From the sequence record NC_042100.1: a stretch of DNA of 64,000 nucleotides; one strand, given 5' to 3'. Position numbers and translations under genes: made by a program. The notes below the pieces were generated by a model. It did no database searches, was not told where the DNA came from, and saw nothing but the letters and a program-made list of their open reading frames with translations. Shown one piece after another: positions 27,504-63,700 of the stretch (positions are counted from its first letter, which is position 1; each line of letters starts with the position of its first letter).

Positions 27504-27530
27504 TTTTCAAATCTATATTACCTACTTGAA
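27504..27530 (+). promoter_or_regulatory. Putative early (virion RNAP) promoter, copy A
   Basis: TTTTCAAATCTATATTACCT contains TATATTAC, the phiKZ early consensus. Follows a terminator. Confidence 0.65.
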
Positions 27531-29015: not shown

Positions 29016-29071
29016 TTCATCAACTGATAACAACTGATTTTACCAACACATATTAATTAAGGATTTATATA

Positions 29072-29470
29072 ATGACTATCAAGAAAGACGGTTCACTAAA
29101 CCAAATTCGTATCTTCGCTCTAGTTCAACTAAGCAGCTGGATTTATCGCCACCATAAAGTGAAGAGCATCAAAGCGATGGCGGAGATGGCTAAAGTAAAC
29201 CCGTCCACTCTAAGTTCCATTAAGAACGGTAGTGTGAAAAGTATCTCGCTTAATCGCATCTTTGCTATTATGGATAATCTCAACATCAACTACACCTTCC
29301 AAATGGTACGACGTAAAGGCATTACTAGTTATTCATTCCAAATGGATGTGTATAACGTTCGTAAAGCGGATACCAGAGACAAAGAAGTCAGCTACCAAGA
29401 AGAGTACAAGCAACTTCGTAGTCACCATCAGTTAAATGAAACGAGTTTCGATAACGTCGTTCATCTTTAA
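29072..29470 (+). CDS. XRE-family helix-turn-helix DNA-binding protein
   Basis: IKAMAEMAKVNPSTLSSIKNGSVKSISLNRIFAIMDNL matches the Cro/C1 (XRE) HTH pattern. Confidence 0.7.
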   Translation: MTIKKDGSLNQIRIFALVQLSSWIYRHHKVKSIKAMAEMAKVNPSTLSSIKNGSVKSISLNRIFAIMDNLNINYTFQMVRRKGITSYSFQMDVYNVRKADTRDKEVSYQEEYKQLRSHHQLNETSFDNVVHL

Positions 29471-29479
29471 TCCAACTAA

Positions 29480-29511
29480 ATACTCAGGGATCCTTCGGGG
29501 TTCCTGAGTAT
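29480..29511 (+). terminator. UUCG-capped hairpin (terminator or mRNA stabiliser)
   Basis: 14-bp stem ATACTCAGGGATCC/GGGTTCCTGAGTAT with TTCG loop, abutting the SD aggag. No immediate U-tract. Confidence 0.55.
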
Positions 29512-29522
29512 AGGAGTTTATT

Positions 29523-29684
29523 ATGTTTTTAAAAGTTAATCCGGTTTCCCCTTATTTTGGGCATCATTCTAAACCAGTTCTTCCAAAACAAACGAAACGC
29601 CGTAAAACGAACAGAGACAGCAATAAGGACTTTCAAGCTATATTGGTTCGTGAATTAAATAAAACGGTAGCCAGAGGTCGTTAG
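29523..29684 (+). CDS. Small basic protein (53 aa), absent from the ORF track
   Basis: SD AGGAG 6 nt before ATG. Translates to MFLKVNPVSPYFGHHSKPVLPKQTKRRKTNRDSNKDFQAILVRELNKTVARGR. Stop lies 1 nt before the next ATG. Confidence 0.65.
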   Translation: MFLKVNPVSPYFGHHSKPVLPKQTKRRKTNRDSNKDFQAILVRELNKTVARGR

Positions 29685-29685
29685 G

Positions 29686-29997
29686 ATGCGTTTATTTAAC
29701 TGTTTTAAAAAGAAACCTAACCCCATTCCTTATGAGAACGTTGCAAGACTGTTAATACGGACCAGTCCAGAAGAAGAACTCACTTTAAGAGTGACTCGAT
29801 ATAAGGAGTTATATTACGTTAACGTTTACGACATCTTTCGATGGAGTGACGGAACTTGGTATAACCAATACGAGAATCAAGCATCAGATGAATTCATGAT
29901 CTCTGCTTTAAACTCATTAAAGTGTGAGTTCATCGTATCCGAGTTTAATAACCTGATTCATGGCACCCTATTACTTGACCATTTTGAATGTAAATGA
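29686..29997 (+). CDS. Hypothetical protein
   Basis: 103 aa, coupled to the upstream small ORF. Confidence 0.6.
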   Translation: MRLFNCFKKKPNPIPYENVARLLIRTSPEEELTLRVTRYKELYYVNVYDIFRWSDGTWYNQYENQASDEFMISALNSLKCEFIVSEFNNLIHGTLLLDHFECK

Positions 29998-30096
29998 AAT
30001 ATTTTCTTACTGGAAAAGTTATCCTAATGGGGGAGGGGGAAAGAGTTAAAAAAGATCGAAGATAATTTAATTAATATATTAAGTTAAATATACCTT

Positions 30097-30136
30097 AGAG
30101 TATATACGACATTACGAAGTGATGAGAGTATATACG
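30097..30136. repeat. 12-bp direct repeat AGAGTATATACG x2 within a structured non-coding element
   Basis: Copies at 30097-30108 and 30125-30136. Each contains the palindrome GTATATAC and is followed by a GNA-loop hairpin. Confidence 0.85.
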
Positions 30137-30234
30137 GTGAGTATTACGGAGTAATACGGATAAAGGTTATTTAACGTATACTACCCTAACGACCGTTAGG
30201 TCAAGATAACAACTGATAACAAAGAGAATACATT

Positions 30235-31074
30235 ATGACTAAACTAACTTACACTCAACGTTTTGCCACTCGTTTTGAAAAGAACATCATGTCACAACAA
30301 CCTGAGCTATTAAAACTGTATCAGCGCATTCTAAATCACAACTACTGGTACGACTATTGTGACGCTATAACAGGCTGGCGAGCAGGTCTAGAGAACGAAC
30401 AAGAAATCATTAAGTTGTTGGATAAAAATAAAGAGCATAAACACTATCCTATTTTACAACGTCTCTGGAGTGAGAAAGGGGATAAAGAAGTAATCAATGG
30501 AGAGGACGTGTTTGCTGAATGGTTAGAAAAATACCAAGATGAGTCCATGGATATGTATCGATTCTTAGAGACACTAGATCTTCTAGAAATGGATGATGAG
30601 AAAATCGCTAGAGCGGTTAGAGCGATGCGTCGAGTAAGTAAGTTCTTGATTGAAGAATCCCGAGTGGAGTCTAAAGTCGTTGACTATTTCCCTAAATTGG
30701 TTTACACAAAACACTTAGGTCCTAAGTCGGTCGGTAAAGAATACGTGGATAAAGTAATGCTACCGAGAAATCTACAGCGTTACACAGAGTTGATGGTTAC
30801 TCAAGTCGAAATGTATGACTTCGATTGTCTGGGTTTGTTGACTCCTAATGTGGGGACTTTTGATACTGTTCGATTTGATCCAGAGTGTGAAAAAGAAGAA
30901 CACTTGGCGTACATCAAAGGGTATCACTTCAAATCAGTATATATCCTTAAAGATAAGTTACTGTCTAAAATTCGTCGTATCGAACTGCGTGATCTGAAAG
31001 ATCTAACCGAAGTCCTAAGAGGGAAACTACCAGTTAAAAGTCTGTACGCTTCTAATACTTCGGAGTACGTATGA
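30235..31074 (+). CDS. Hypothetical protein
   Basis: 279 aa. First gene of an overlapping gene string. Confidence 0.7.
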   Translation: MTKLTYTQRFATRFEKNIMSQQPELLKLYQRILNHNYWYDYCDAITGWRAGLENEQEIIKLLDKNKEHKHYPILQRLWSEKGDKEVINGEDVFAEWLEKYQDESMDMYRFLETLDLLEMDDEKIARAVRAMRRVSKFLIEESRVESKVVDYFPKLVYTKHLGPKSVGKEYVDKVMLPRNLQRYTELMVTQVEMYDFDCLGLLTPNVGTFDTVRFDPECEKEEHLAYIKGYHFKSVYILKDKLLSKIRRIELRDLKDLTEVLRGKLPVKSLYASNTSEYV

Positions 31075-35538: not shown

Positions 35539-35541
35539 CCA

Positions 35542-35575
35542 TTACCTTAACCAGCTTACGGGCTGGTTAAGGTAA
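35542..35575 (+). terminator. Hairpin / possible terminator
   Basis: 14-bp stem TTACCTTAACCAGC/GCTGGTTAAGGTAA. Confidence 0.6.
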
Positions 35576-35599
35576 CCTTATCATCACAAGGAGGGTAAT

Positions 35600-35926
35600 T
35601 TGAACGTACCTGCTGTTTTGGGTGCTGTTTTCGGTACTGCCATTACTGGGTTAGCTACTGAGGACCCAAAAGCTACTTTACTAGGTGCGGCTACGGGTTT
35701 AATCACCGTAGGTATATTGGACTCTGTGAAGAAAGAAAATGAAGACCAAGATGGCGACTTCTTGACCAATCTTTCTCCTAGAGATTTTTGTACTACAGCG
35801 TGTGCTTCACTATGGCCTTCGTTAGTGTACGAAAAAGAAGAACTATATCAACCACGTATTCTGGATGACGATGAATTGTGGACTGAAGATGATATTTTGG
35901 ATTTACCTATTACTATCCAAAGTTAA
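35600..35926 (+). CDS. Small membrane protein with glycine-zipper N-terminus and acidic tail
   Basis: TTG start after SD AGGAGGG. VLGAVFGTAITG...LLGAATGLITVG. Confidence 0.65.
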   Translation: MNVPAVLGAVFGTAITGLATEDPKATLLGAATGLITVGILDSVKKENEDQDGDFLTNLSPRDFCTTACASLWPSLVYEKEELYQPRILDDDELWTEDDILDLPITIQS

Positions 35927-35938
35927 AAAGCAGTAATA

Positions 35939-35992
35939 ATACCTTACCTCCCGTTATCGGGAGGTAAGGTATCTTTTTAAGTTTATTTTTTT
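35939..35992. terminator. Bidirectional intrinsic terminator
   Basis: 15-bp stem ATACCTTACCTCCCG/CGGGAGGTAAGGTAT with T tracts, between convergent genes. Confidence 0.85.
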
Positions 35993-35997
35993 ATCTA

Positions 35998-40525: not shown

Positions 40526-40552
40526 TTTTTACAAATCTATATTATCTTTGTG
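40526..40552 (+). promoter_or_regulatory. Putative early promoter, copy C
   Basis: TTTTTACAAATCTATATTATCTTTGTG, nearly identical to copy A. Follows a terminator. Confidence 0.6.
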
Positions 40553-47523: not shown

Positions 47524-48269
47524 CAGAAAAAGATCGTTCTATATTTGGTGAATTCACACCGGAACAGTTCCTTGAGGTTATGAAAGGTGAGTATTTTGAC
47601 GAGCAACTGCTCCGAAAGTGGTTAACGGAAAAACGGGAGATGAGTCTACTAACCCAACTCCCACCGTCCCTGAGCTTTTCTATCCAACGCAGGTTCTATA
47701 ACGTCATTATTCCGACGAACGACGTTATGTACACTTGCATAGATAACCTCGACCATTATCCCATGGTGGTGTCAGAAGACCTAATGGGGGTGAGTGAGAT
47801 TTTGAATCATCTCTTGATGGACGAGTATAAGGAACGTAAAGTAATTTCTGTGGCACTTCGTAGGTTGTTAATGGAAACCTCCAACCACCATAACGATTAT
47901 CCATACATACTTGAAGTGACTGTCGGGAACGAACAGCTGACACTAAGTTTCTTAAATGAAAGTTTTGTGGATATGGATCCTTTAGAGTGGACAGAAAAAT
48001 ACGTAGATCACCGAATCTTAAACGGGTCCTACGATCGTAAATCGCTCGATGAACGCCATGAGGATGGTCCTACTAATTCATCTGATGAGATGTTCAAAGA
48101 AGTTGGTAACTCTTTACAGGAAGCCATACAGGAAGTTAAAGAAACACCTTTGGCTGAACACATCGAAGGTGGGATGGGTGACGACGGTCGTTATGTAGTT
48201 AAAACCTTCCGTCAGTTCCATAACCGTGAAGAGTACTTGGATTACATGCGTAAAGTCATGGACCTTTAA
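47520..48269 (+). CDS. Hypothetical acidic protein
   Basis: ATGA overlap at 47520 with SD gagga, preferred over the track's 47478. Confidence 0.65.
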   Translation: MTEKDRSIFGEFTPEQFLEVMKGEYFDEQLLRKWLTEKREMSLLTQLPPSLSFSIQRRFYNVIIPTNDVMYTCIDNLDHYPMVVSEDLMGVSEILNHLLMDEYKERKVISVALRRLLMETSNHHNDYPYILEVTVGNEQLTLSFLNESFVDMDPLEWTEKYVDHRILNGSYDRKSLDERHEDGPTNSSDEMFKEVGNSLQEAIQEVKETPLAEHIEGGMGDDGRYVVKTFRQFHNREEYLDYMRKVMDL

Positions 48270-48278
48270 TAAACATTC

Positions 48279-48331
48279 TAACCTCACCTCCTTAACGGGA
48301 GGTGAGGTTATGTTTGCTTTCTTTATTTTTT
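48279..48331 (+). terminator. Intrinsic terminator
   Basis: 14-bp stem TAACCTCACCTCCT/GGGAGGTGAGGTTA followed by T tracts. Confidence 0.8.
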
Positions 48332-48343
48332 AACATACAGTTT

Positions 48344-48370
48344 ATTTCAGACCTATATAGTCTAGGTGTA
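48344..48370 (+). promoter_or_regulatory. Putative early promoter, copy D (variant)
   Basis: ATTTCAGACCTATATAGTCTAGGTG aligns to copies A-C. Follows a terminator. Confidence 0.5.
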
Positions 48371-48419
48371 TAAAGATACATGTATTTAAATTCAACTAAC
48401 CTTAAAGAAGGAACACATT

Positions 48420-60769: not shown

Positions 60770-63700
60770 ATGAACCTCCCCGAGATTAAACAATATCGGT
60801 TTGATGTAAGAGGGTCGGCGAGAGAGAACTTAGTTCCTCGAGAGTTGATCCCTGCCAGTGATGAACGCAGTGCTAAGATCGTGGTCCCTAGACACGCACC
60901 TTTTTTCATTGAGTCAGTTCACGTTTACATCGCCGGTCAAACGGTTCCCCTTAACTTAGGTGAGCACTATGACTTCGTGAGCATTGATCACGAGTTATCC
61001 GAATACTGCGGTAACCGAGTGAGTTGGGTGATCCGTAAACTCAAAGACAACCTACCAGACTTAGAGATCACCTATCAAACGTTAGGTTCCATTCCAGCGT
61101 TAACCGCGACCACGAAGTACTGGTATGAAGCGGCAGCGTTAGACCAACGTCCTGTGTGGTTCGATCAGCTATTAAACAAACCAAGTCACTACATGCCAAT
61201 GTTACACGGCCATGATCTAGCACAAGGTTTCTTTAATTTCTCACGTCTTATTGAAGTTTACGAAGATCGATATGAAACACTATTTGGTCAAGATGCTTTA
61301 GTGCCTTATCGTGATTGGTTTATTGCTCAGCTCAATAACCTTAAATCGTACGTACAACCTTACAGAACGCTTTTGGAGCGTTACACTGACAATCACATTG
61401 AGCATCAACGAGATCCTCATGGAACGCGTTCTAGGGCGGTTCCCGGGTTAGATCAAATCGATGAAGTGAAAACCGCTTCACATTTGGACATCGAAGCTGG
61501 AAACAATGATCGTCTACGAGTTGTTGCAGCTCAAGCTCACGACCTCATTAATAAAGTCGGACCTAATCCTAAAGATCACGTACCTCCAACGATTGTTGGT
61601 GATTATGGTCAACACCTACTACCGTTAGACGGTAGTCCTTCTCCAATTCCGAAAACAACACTTACCGTTGGTGTTAAGGATTTGATGGTCAACGCTTACG
61701 TGGATAGACTAGGAGTAGGTCGAGGTCAACAACTCTTCACGGGTAACGATAAAGACGTAGTTAACAATATCTTTAACCCGAATCCAATCAGTGATGACCG
61801 TAACCCGAATGACAACGTTTGGATTAACGAACACATTGATGCCGGATATGATTTGTTTGTGGCAGGCGGTAACCGTGAAGCTCGATTAATGTACAACGCT
61901 TCCGGGAACTACTGGGACTTGATTATAGATCCAATCAATCCAACGGATTACAAAACACAACCCGATACCAAAATACGAGTAACCGGGGACATGAGTGATG
62001 TCAAACGATACATTAGAGAATGGCGTCTAATCCATACCGAAGGTGCAGTGCATTTGATTCGTACTGTTGACCATGAGACCCGCCCTACAGTTCATTGGAA
62101 AACAATCACCTACCGTTCAGAACACGGTAACGTTGGTGTGGTACGTTCGTACACGTTCAAATACAAAACCATCAACGATGGGACGAACTACACTGAACAA
62201 GGTCGAGTGATTTTGTTTCCTCGAGGATTCAGTTCCGGTCGTTATGCCAACGGGGACTTGGTGTTTTCCGACCCAGTGGAGTTGGTTCGTGAAGACAATC
62301 AGATCTTGATTCTTCCTGCGGTAGTGGAGGACGCGCTCTATATGGAGTTCTTACTCCCTGAGACGTTCCGACATAAAGGGGAATTGCGCCGTTATGTTCA
62401 CTCTCATATGGCGGAAGTAAATCTGGACCATAGTAAAGCGGAAATGACATTGACGTGGACCGACACTCGACCTCGTCCTTATGTTGTAACTGATTCATTG
62501 TTTTCTAAGACACCCGATGCGAATAACTACTTTGAGCAAGTTGCGGTCCCTTTCCCTAGTGAGTTAACCAGTCGACGTGCAACTTTAGTTCAAATGTCTC
62601 AAGAAGGATTCTTCGGATTTGGGTATAAAGAGAACTCCCTTGGTGAAATGTTTGCAGTACGCATTACCCCCGGTGAATACTCTATTGATCATACTGGTCG
62701 TAAATGGCATTTGGCGGACACGGGTGAATGGGCAGTTAACCGAGTGGGTGGAGCTTCTCCTATTAACCACGATCACATCGACGTAGGACACCTCCCTCCT
62801 ATGAATCCTTACATGGGGGTTTGGGCTGAGTCTAATGTTCGTAACCGTTACGGTATCGTGAAGGGCATCCATCCTGAGCACGGCATGGGTTTCTTTTACA
62901 AGAACTTGTACGGCGGAGTTAACTTACAAACGATCGCCGGGTCGGAAGTCAGAACCAGTTTACCTCTGGACAACATCGAATACGTGCAGGGTTTACACCC
63001 AAGTCGCTGGATTGGTACGGTGCTGGATGAATCAGAACGTGAATCTGAATTTTGTTGGCAAGTGGCTTCTTCCGACGGTGTTGATCGCTGTGTTCCTTAT
63101 CAAGTGGGATTCAGTGGTTCTCAGTTCACGGTAATCCACTACGTTAAAGTTTCTGATGAATGGTTAGCTGGACTTGGAGTCACCGAAAACGACCATTGGA
63201 CTCTACTATTGGGTAGACCACACGATCTTCCAGACTTGTTGTTCATTACTCGAGTACAAGCCGGGTTAATTAAAACCACGGTTAAAGTACTTCGTGTGTC
63301 GGACGAAGTCTTGGGTCGTGTTGACGGCATGCACGATCATACTACGATGACCACACTAGGTGCGGATGACGTACCAACGATCATTGACGAACGAACAACG
63401 TCACATCCTTCCCCCGCTCATGTCGTAAAGGAAAAGATTGGTCATCCTAACCCTTCCATGGACACTAATGTGATTAACGTTCTGATGGGAGTGAGTGGTC
63501 GCACTACGTTCAACTTGCACCCTAACAACCGATTTGGGAATGAATCCCATCAACTGACTTATCCGTTTTCGTTGGTGTTAAATCAGAGTAATGACACGAT
63601 CGCCTTCTTTGAAGATGAGATTAAAGACGGCTGTGTGGGGTTGTCTCCTGATTTAGGTTGGGTTCGTACCTCAAACAAAGCACAGCGTATGTGTGGAGGT

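Follow-up and report, generated by a model that had tools for sequence, protein, structure and literature searches.

The phage elements whose layout appears to come closest to the one described here are the putL and putR sites of HK022 and the nutL and nutR sites of lambda. In each of these genomes, a compact stem-loop RNA occurs as a pair of paralogs in the leaders or intergenic parts of rightward or leftward operons. The copies share a structure and key nucleotides, differ from each other in compensatory ways, and act on the host RNA polymerase. Vibrio phage Aphrodite1 (NC_042100 / MG720308) likewise has two paralogous structured leader elements in its genome. This phage is a member of the Gorgonvirinae within the Chimalliviridae, which are nucleus-forming jumbo phages that carry out transcription with their own non-canonical RNA polymerases, and we know of almost no defined regulatory RNAs and of no defined replication origin in the Chimalliviridae. 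The likeness to put and nut is one of resemblance and not of membership. The put sites consist of two hairpins of ~70 nt and the nut sites of boxA and one boxB hairpin, whereas the element is a ~110-nt junction with a 5' block. Both put and nut suppress downstream terminators, but none has been identified by the element, and the phages considered here differ from the put and nut systems in using multisubunit polymerases of their own (PMC7598289).

Other systems resemble the element in single features. The phi29 pRNA is also a phage non-coding RNA of similar size (~120 nt) with a three-way junction and with its 5' and 3' ends in a long helix. However, it is encoded by one gene, whereas the element exists as two diverged paralogs in a context unrelated to packaging genes and has no Rfam match. 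The triloops of the element are not mutually complementary, so ring-forming loop-loop contacts like those of pRNA are not evident. The N4 promoters and d(GCGNAGC) share with the element the C-GNA-G triloop, its sheared G.A pair and free central base, and stems of 5-7 bp. In N4, a single template-strand hairpin occupies positions -17 to -5 of the early promoters (PMC4496689). That hairpin lies near the genome end, has a G+C-rich centre and serves a single-subunit virion polymerase, whereas the hairpins here belong as arms to a larger junction, which is found on the coding-sense strand and at two loci inside the genome. No N4-type polymerase gene is annotated in Aphrodite1, and a different linear promoter motif serves its genome. 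Finally, G4 ori-c and RSF1010 ssiA/ssiB are comparable as strand-specific folded DNA with GNA/GNNA mini-hairpins. These mini-hairpins are recognised by primase, and RSF1010 has two such signals per replicon (PMC13037366). However, replicons with such signals either have an ssDNA stage or carry the signals adjacent to each other on opposite strands at oriV, whereas the copies in this dsDNA jumbo phage lie 74 kb apart on the same strand and have a weak fold as DNA.

The element pair marks short, unique loci under purifying selection far stronger than that on the surrounding genes. If it acts as RNA, then it would define a structured RNA family that is new and restricted to a single phage subfamily. 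Action at the DNA level would instead indicate sites of priming or initiation in these phages, and a folded + strand DNA signal, if that reading is true, would mean that replication or priming sites have been defined for the first time in a phiKZ-like phage.

A three-way junction present in two copies

The window analysed is a stretch of 64,000 nt from the 237.7-kb Aphrodite1 genome, and positions in it equal the record position minus 124000. Copy 1 lies at 154.1 kb on the record, in a 237-bp spacer (29998-30234) between the + strand genes gp121 and gp122. All motifs listed in an earlier note on this DNA can be read directly in the spacer where that note placed them, including a near-pure A/T stretch at 30062-30092. 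The core of copy 1 (30070-30183, ~110 nt) is predicted to form a three-way junction in which a closing stem of ~18 bp (P1) carries a composite P2/P2a arm and a P3 arm (Table 1).

Table 1. Predicted features of copy 1 and its surroundings, in window positions
Feature	Positions	Strand	Remarks
5' block start	30003..30028	+	begins right after gp121 stop; includes TTACTGGAAAAG (30007-30018); candidate promoter region
G-rich box GGGGGAGGGGG, then AAAGAG	30029-30039	+	near-invariant in 8 orthologs
Mini-hairpin AUC-GAA-GAU	30055..30063	+	third C-GAA-G triloop; invariant in 8 orthologs; in MFE fold
A/T-rich block	30058..30082	+	invariant in all orthologs up to 30077; no counterpart tract in copy 2
P1 extension, 5' strand (UAUAU)	30074..30078	+	pairs with 30176-30180
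P1, 5' strand (GUUAAAUA-U-ACCUU)	30083..30096	+	from MFE folds of 12 distinct sequences
J1/2	30097..30099	+	with flanking bases CCUUAGAG, invariant in 16/16 sequences
P2, 5' strand (GUAUAUAC)	30100..30107	+	pairs with 30128-30135; core of first "direct repeat"
P2a with flanks	30108..30127	+	purine internal loop GA / (A)GA, tandem G.A
P2a hairpin CAUUAC-GAA-GUGAUG	30110-30124	+	one U.G wobble
P2, 3' strand (GUAUAUAC)	30128..30135	+	core of second "direct repeat"; pairs with P2 5' strand
J2/3 GGUGA	30136..30140	+	ACGGUGAGU invariant in 16/16 sequences
P3 hairpin GUAUUAC-GGA-GUAAUAC	30141..30157	+	loop GGA, GAA or GCA
J3/1 GGAUA	30158..30162	+	A-rich in every copy
P1, 3' strand (AAGGU-UAUUUAAC) and extension (GUAUA)	30163..30180	+	pairs with P1 5' strand
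P4 hairpin CCUAAC-GACC-GUUAGG	30185..30200	+	accessory, not universal
gp122 leader	30205..30234	+	GATAAC-N4-GATAAC direct repeat, then weak RBS (AAGAG); ATG at 30235

The nested stems described in the earlier note are real: the outer stem pairs 30083-30096 with 30163-30175 and encloses the inner hairpins. P1 forms a long, near-perfect duplex in both copies. Its sequence is wholly different in copy 2 and is still paired there, and both partners have changed in 7 of its 13 pairs. In the P1 extension, one position varies among U-G, C-G and U-A and another between U-A and U-G, which are pair types available on the + strand only. The P2a loop becomes GUA in phiKT1028, and the 3' side of the adjacent internal loop reads AGA, GGA, GAA or GA among relatives. 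P3 has a long form in copy 1 of phiKT1028 and VP4B and in every copy 2, in which a lower stem of 5 bp is followed by a GUA/GNA internal loop and by GUAC-GNA-GUAC, and the lower stem changes from A-U to G-C and from U-A to U-G. The strands of the junction are purine-rich and invariant (CCUUAGAG, ACGGUGAGU and GAUAAA). Each copy has three C-GNA-G (or G-GUA-C) triloop hairpins in which N may be A, G, C or U while the G, the A and the closing C-G pair are fixed, so the triloops singled out in the earlier note are conserved. P4 changes from C-G to A-U in pTD1 and phiKT1019, is weakened in PDCC-1, and is absent in phiKT1028 and VP4B. It does not qualify as an intrinsic terminator because it lacks a T run; TCAAGATAAC comes next.

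The spacer is unusually stable when folded as RNA, with -51.4 kcal/mol on the + strand (z = -3.5; 1 of 200 shuffles as good) and -41.0 kcal/mol on the - strand (z = -3.0). Minimum free energy prediction returns the same three-way junction for all 12 distinct sequences. In an alignment of 16 sequences, 93.0% of cells pair, against 77.8% in shuffled alignments and 28-52% when the partners are slid; changes on both sides affect 18 of 33 pairs (52 cells), and none of 500 shuffles reaches any of five measures. This alignment was fitted to the model and its changes represent few independent events, as they come from eight genomes, two genera and one old duplication. A MAFFT alignment of the orthologs only has 94.4% of its cells paired, against 48% or less. 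The fold goes beyond chance, as it is kept with compensatory changes in eight related phages and in a paralog, and the earlier note is supported in its proposal of a non-coding, structured and functional element. It also gives clear mutational predictions, which concern compensatory pairs in P1, P2 and P3, the GNA loops and the junction purines.

P2 provides a particularly informative case. The 12-mer AGAGTATATACG has two exact copies in the 64-kb window (30097-30108 and 30125-30136, spaced by 28 nt), and these had been described as iteron-like direct repeats containing GTATATAC palindromes that could also pair with each other. If up to two mismatches are allowed, then 5 matches are found in the window where 4.8 are expected, so only the exact pair is special. 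In pTD1, phiKT1019 and phiKT1028 (Tidunavirus), GTATATAC is replaced by GTATGTAT in the first 12-mer and by GTACATAC in the second. These words are no longer repeats or palindromes and yet are complementary, which identifies them as the strands of one helix and not as iterons. The changes involved (A-U to G-C and C-G to U-G) support the pairing between the two palindromes by covariation.

Copy 2 occupies positions 80356-80466 of the record (80.4 kb), on the + strand between gp051 and gp052, and thus lies outside the window. Covariance models built from the eight orthologs or from both copy sets each find exactly two copies in the genome. P1 and P2 of copy 2 differ in sequence from those of copy 1 and their stems are fully compensated, whereas the junction strands are the same (CCUUAGAG, ACGGUGAGU and GAUAAAAGG). 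The long P3 of copy 2 combines the lower stem with a GUA/GUA internal loop and GUAC-GAA-GUAC. Between Tidunavirus and Aphroditevirus, which are the only two genera of the Gorgonvirinae, the differences in P1 of copy 2 are paired substitutions and a one-base deletion that is matched between the two strands. An RNAalifold fold of the extended copy 2 region was discarded as spurious because the P1 3' strands were misaligned.

Both copies are present and folded at syntenic sites in all eight Gorgonvirinae genomes. BLAST matches to the copy 1 spacer (USC-1, 5 TSL-2019, 2 TSL-2019, PDCC-1, phiKT1019, pTD1, phiKT1028 and VP4B) always place it upstream of a gp122 homolog. With Aphrodite1 as the reference, the stretch that starts just behind the upstream stop codon and runs through the outer stem has identities of 99, 95, 94, 96, 90, 81 and 70%; it is 81-99% identical in seven genomes and 69.5% in VP4B, which has an insert, compared with 55-87% for the flanking genes. 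Copy 2 has 85-99% identity, compared with 53-96% for its flanking genes. In phiKT1028 and VP4B, the identity of the gp122 protein itself drops to ~40%.

When IMG/VR, JGI metagenomes and GTDB genomes were searched with patterns and proteins, no element was found outside the same phage genomes, and protein searches with gp122 and gp052 reach the same phages only. A 19-mer spanning J2/3 and P3 matches only these genomes in IMG/VR, and its single GTDB match is a chance hit that the covariance model rejects. The model also rejects all 11 extra loci returned by a gapped junction pattern, each of which lies in coding sequence. Other exact queries gave chance matches: 14-15-mers give ~100 each in IMG/VR, and the invariant A/T 21-mer gives five in JGI metagenomes. 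Further close variants are found in public marine, fish-gut and mollusc runs, and Logan contigs contain two more natural variants.

The 5' block, candidate promoters and neighboring genes

Conservation is not limited to the core: in each copy, the ~70-80 nt before it are conserved to the same degree. In all eight phages, conservation around copy 1 begins with the first part of the 5' block (30003-30028). The blocks of the two copies share only short words, namely TAATATATTA, UC-GAA-GA, GGGAAAG(A/G)GTTA and T(T/G)TACT..AAAAG, and these occur in a different order, which makes the alignment of copy 1 with copy 2 ambiguous in this region. Copy 2 also has the word GTACTAAAAAG, which is similar to TTACTGGAAAAG. 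Within the 237.7-kb genome, the palindrome TAATATATTA (30072-30081 in copy 1) is confined to the two elements, and GGGAAAG[AG]G occurs in just five places, two of which are the elements. The mini-hairpin upstream of the core reads GUC-GAA-GAC in copy 2, which is an A-U to G-C change.

These shared words could include a promoter. The middle promoters of phiKZ have a TACT motif ~22 nt upstream of the transcription start (PMC8244752), and by analogy the same spacing would place the start of copy 1 near the G-rich box. In phiKT1028, the 5' block comes immediately after a G+C-rich hairpin with a T run, and this terminator-like structure suggests that the element needs a promoter of its own within the block there. 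A genome scan found no further members of a TACT..AAAAG promoter class, and no sigma-70-like promoter rises above chance in the spacer. A different, clear promoter-like motif, TCTATATTAYY with an A/T tract before it, is found ten times, always on the + strand. The nine occurrences that were checked lie ~50-90 nt upstream of the neighboring gene, and one of the ten sits between copy 2 and gp052.

The genes around copy 1 are unrelated to those around copy 2, and no common regulated function can therefore be named. Neither Pfam nor PHROGs provides a name for gp121 or for the genes downstream of copy 1. A Cro/C1-type HTH gene (gp120) lies ~0.6 kb upstream of copy 1, and the gp052 operon downstream of copy 2 continues into three AraC-type HTH proteins and PhuZ. 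The neighboring genes at both loci are all on the + strand, but this is weak evidence for RNA because most Aphrodite1 genes are on that strand. The copy 1 element lies 54 nt from the gp122 start codon. Copy 2 is separated from gp052 by ~125 nt of variable spacer with a separate strong promoter motif inside it, so a simple 5'-UTR role is not obvious for this copy.

Action as RNA or DNA and possible roles

The element represents a new, narrowly distributed family of structured nucleic-acid elements, with RNA as the likeliest form. Its + strand is more stable than its - strand in all 12 distinct sequences, by 4-14 kcal/mol with RNA parameters and likewise when DNA parameters are used. Several positions shift among C-G, U-G and U-A, and the tandem G.A pairs and GUA/GUA loops exist on the + strand only. 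These strand-specific wobble and G.A pairs, together with a length of ~110 nt closed by an 18-bp stem, favor RNA. The energy of the core is -19 to -33 kcal/mol as RNA and -11 to -17 kcal/mol as DNA, and the latter is too weak to extrude a 110-nt junction with an 18-bp stem from duplex DNA. Overall, the element probably acts as RNA. The stems are constrained only by pairing between the paralogs but are near-frozen among orthologs, beyond what pairing alone requires, which suggests that they make sequence-specific contacts in addition to maintaining the fold.

From these sequence comparisons, we lean toward the view that a new + strand structured RNA specific to the Gorgonvirinae exists in two paralogous copies, one of them encoded by the spacer. 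Such an RNA would be transcribed rightward with its neighboring genes from the predicted promoter inside the 5' block, and its start site may fall near the G-rich box; we infer the start, the 3' end and the promoter alike. The fixed junction and repeated triloop hairpins could then serve as a recognition platform for a phage (or host) protein. The RNA may form the 5' leader of two operons, one comprising gp122-126 and the other gp052, the AraC-type regulators and PhuZ. Alternatively, it may be a small stable RNA that is released from the two operon leaders.

A rather unlikely alternative is a strand-specific DNA signal, in which the mini-hairpins and junction of a single-stranded + strand would be read by a primase, helicase or RNA polymerase. 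Such a signal could serve single-strand initiation, form part of an origin or work as a hairpin promoter, and it would become accessible through supercoil extrusion or on the lagging-strand template. The triloops fit this reading. The C-GNA-G triloop is characteristic of hyperstable DNA mini-hairpins, and the corresponding RNA hairpins have a much lower stability (PMC13037366). Three GNA triloops with a C-G closing pair and a free central base are present in each copy, and this is the ultra-stable DNA signature found in the priming sites of G4, St-1 and alpha3, in RSF1010 ssiA and in the N4 early promoters (PMC13037366, PMC4496689). The near-frozen helices, the absence of any visible terminator to define an RNA, and the low G+C of copy 1 (28%) with the invariant A/T block before it would also be expected of a DNA signal. 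However, the weakness of the DNA fold argues against extrusion, the helices repeatedly pass through G.U-type intermediates, and these dsDNA phages have no obligatory ssDNA stage. Copy 2 has 40% G+C and no A/T tract, so the AT-rich region of the earlier note is not supported as a defining, unwinding part of the element.

Specific forms of this reading meet further difficulties. With respect to an origin, the cumulative GC skew has only a weak local maximum at 155.9 kb (~1.8 kb from copy 1) and no diagnostic switch, and no initiator gene is recognisable among the neighbors. The hairpins do have N4-type geometry (5-7 bp stem, G-N-A loop), but their stable GNA form is on the strand that is non-template for all neighboring genes. 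An N4-type hairpin is on the template strand (PMC4496689), 8 nt upstream of the start site of early genes, and in this arrangement it would drive leftward, antisense transcription. Moreover, the only RNA polymerase genes in the annotation encode beta-type subunits, and a separate linear promoter motif exists. Thus, from the earlier proposal of an origin, hairpin promoter or ncRNA, a conserved, structured, non-coding element stands, whereas iterons, a demonstrated origin and a demonstrated hairpin promoter do not. We also consider it unlikely that the two elements are strand-specific initiation signals, whether as + strand DNA for a primase-helicase or polymerase, as an RNA origin primer or as a put-like polymerase modifier.

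A role in RNA processing or stability is quite improbable. T7 early mRNA has processing sites, and the 18-bp P1 could similarly be an RNase III-type site or an exonuclease barrier in polycistronic transcripts. The long duplex in both copies, the same-strand genes on either side with no terminator, and a phage protein annotated as a ribonuclease are compatible with this idea. However, a genome of ~200 genes has only two such sites, a cleavage site would need far less than a conserved junction, an internal loop in P3 and a 5' block of 70-80 nt, and in phiKT1028 a terminator-like hairpin precedes the element.

It is very doubtful that the junction is a riboswitch-like aptamer that binds a small molecule and controls the downstream genes. 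The pattern between the paralogs is aptamer-like, with fixed junctions and P3 and covarying P1 and P2, the copies lie upstream of different genes, and copy 1 is 54 nt away from the gp122 start codon. However, no expression platform is found: there is no terminator after either copy and no intrinsic terminator in 29400-30400, and the spacer contains neither an anti-Shine-Dalgarno sequence nor any sequence able to sequester the gp122 RBS. The long variable spacer with its promoter motif before gp052 also argues against this role, as do the lack of a metabolic hint from the genes downstream of the copies and of an Rfam riboswitch match. In fact, neither copy matches any family in Rfam 15, even at E up to 10.

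A dsDNA site array, such as an iteron-type origin or an operator bound by a phage protein like HTH gp120, is highly improbable and largely refuted by covariation: the exact 12-mer repeat with its 28-nt spacing, the HTH genes near both copies and the restricted palindrome TAATATATTA would suit it, but the repeat has only two copies that diverge in the Tidunavirus clade while staying complementary, copy 2 has unrelated sequence at the same structural positions, and such a site requires neither compensatory helix changes nor wobble and G.A pairs that are asymmetric between the strands.

Several more specific identities were rejected. The structured core contains no ORF, and indels of 1 and 2 nt among relatives rule out coding. 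A leader peptide is not supported, as an ATG at 30027 and a 23-aa ORF (29994-30065) are not kept in relatives. A hammerhead ribozyme, which has the core strands CUGANGA and GAAA and a UH cleavage site at its junction, does not agree with the junction strands AGA(G), GGUGA and GGAUA; a GUGAUGAG-like stretch considered in this check is variable in relatives, and there is no Rfam match. A long-range helix between CCUAAUGG (30023-30030) and CCGUUAGG (30193-30200) was dismissed since the changes in pTD1 keep P4 instead, and pairing of the G-rich box with the CCC after P1 was dismissed since this CCC is not conserved. A CsrA-type GGA sponge or a Shine-Dalgarno mimic was dropped because GGA motifs are too few and two phages have GAA where the loop is otherwise GGA. 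A MITE-like mobile element does not agree with the synteny in all genomes or with closing stems that differ between the copies. ARAGORN detects no tRNA or tmRNA in the whole genome, and a whole-genome Rfam scan at the gathering threshold returns only a group I intron, which lies elsewhere. Downstream of copy 1, both GATAAC repeats of the gp122 leader change to GACAAC in pTD1 and phiKT1019.

Possible exchange between phages and between element copies

Phage phiKT1019 is apparently a mosaic. When its sequence (segments L005 and L249) is compared with that of pTD1 (segments L006 and L253), copy 1 of the element and its flanks turn out to be pTD1-like, whereas the copy-2 core matches the Aphroditevirus type without any difference. 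The distribution of the 5' block haplotypes GAGTTAAAAAAG and GACTTGAAAAC crosses genus boundaries, and the P3 hairpin of the copy-2 type is present in copy 1 of both VP4B and phiKT1028. Taken together, these sequence patterns suggest that recombination or gene conversion has occurred among phages as well as between the element's two copies.

Motifs and hairpins near the element and its neighbouring genes

The exact 13-mer GATAACAACTGAT could act as an operator or as a leader motif. One of its two copies in the window precedes the HTH gene gp120 by 46 nt and is kept there in most relatives, and the other precedes gp122 by 30 nt. In the gp122 leaders of pTD1 and phiKT1019, GATAAC changes to GACAAC in both units together.

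The promoter-like motif TCTATATTAYY, with an A/T-rich tract on its 5' side, occurs 10 times in the Aphrodite1 genome and always on the + strand. It is similar to the AT-rich, -10-centred early-promoter motifs of phiKZ-like phages. All nine copies that were checked for a neighbouring gene are located ~50-90 nt from the downstream gene, and one copy of the motif is situated between element copy 2 and gp052. A G+C-rich hairpin similar to the one near gp120 is found in phiKT1028 (segment L236, ~2428-2466), where it is followed by a T run and sits directly 5' of the element's conserved 5' block.

Features in and around the window, with coordinates
Feature	Window position	Record position	Strand	Remark
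G+C-rich hairpin	29482-29509			UUCG loop, without T run; between gp120 and 53-aa ORF
53-aa ORF	29523-29684			absent from Aphrodite1 RefSeq annotation
GATAACAACTGAT, exact 13-mer	29026-29038; 30205-30217			two copies in window
TCTATATTAYY, promoter-like	27509-27522; 40533-40546		+	window sites
TCTATATTAYY, promoter-like		80518; 107693; 206411	+	examples of 8 further sites in genome

Possible unannotated coding and non-coding features

A counterpart of the 53-aa ORF is annotated at the equivalent site in USC-1, 2 TSL-2019, phiKT1019 and pTD1. Crude ORF tiling of the window found no ATG-started ORF of at least 50 aa in 35539-35997, 47905-48419 or 60910-62228, and these ORF-poor stretches could contain genes that the annotation lacks, or other non-coding elements. 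Elsewhere in Aphrodite1, a group I intron match (Rfam, 55 bits, E 7e-11) is located outside the window at record 95793-96149 (L244:45793-46149). This match starts inside the last ~100 nt of gp066, the annotated RNA polymerase beta-subunit gene, and extends beyond the gene end.
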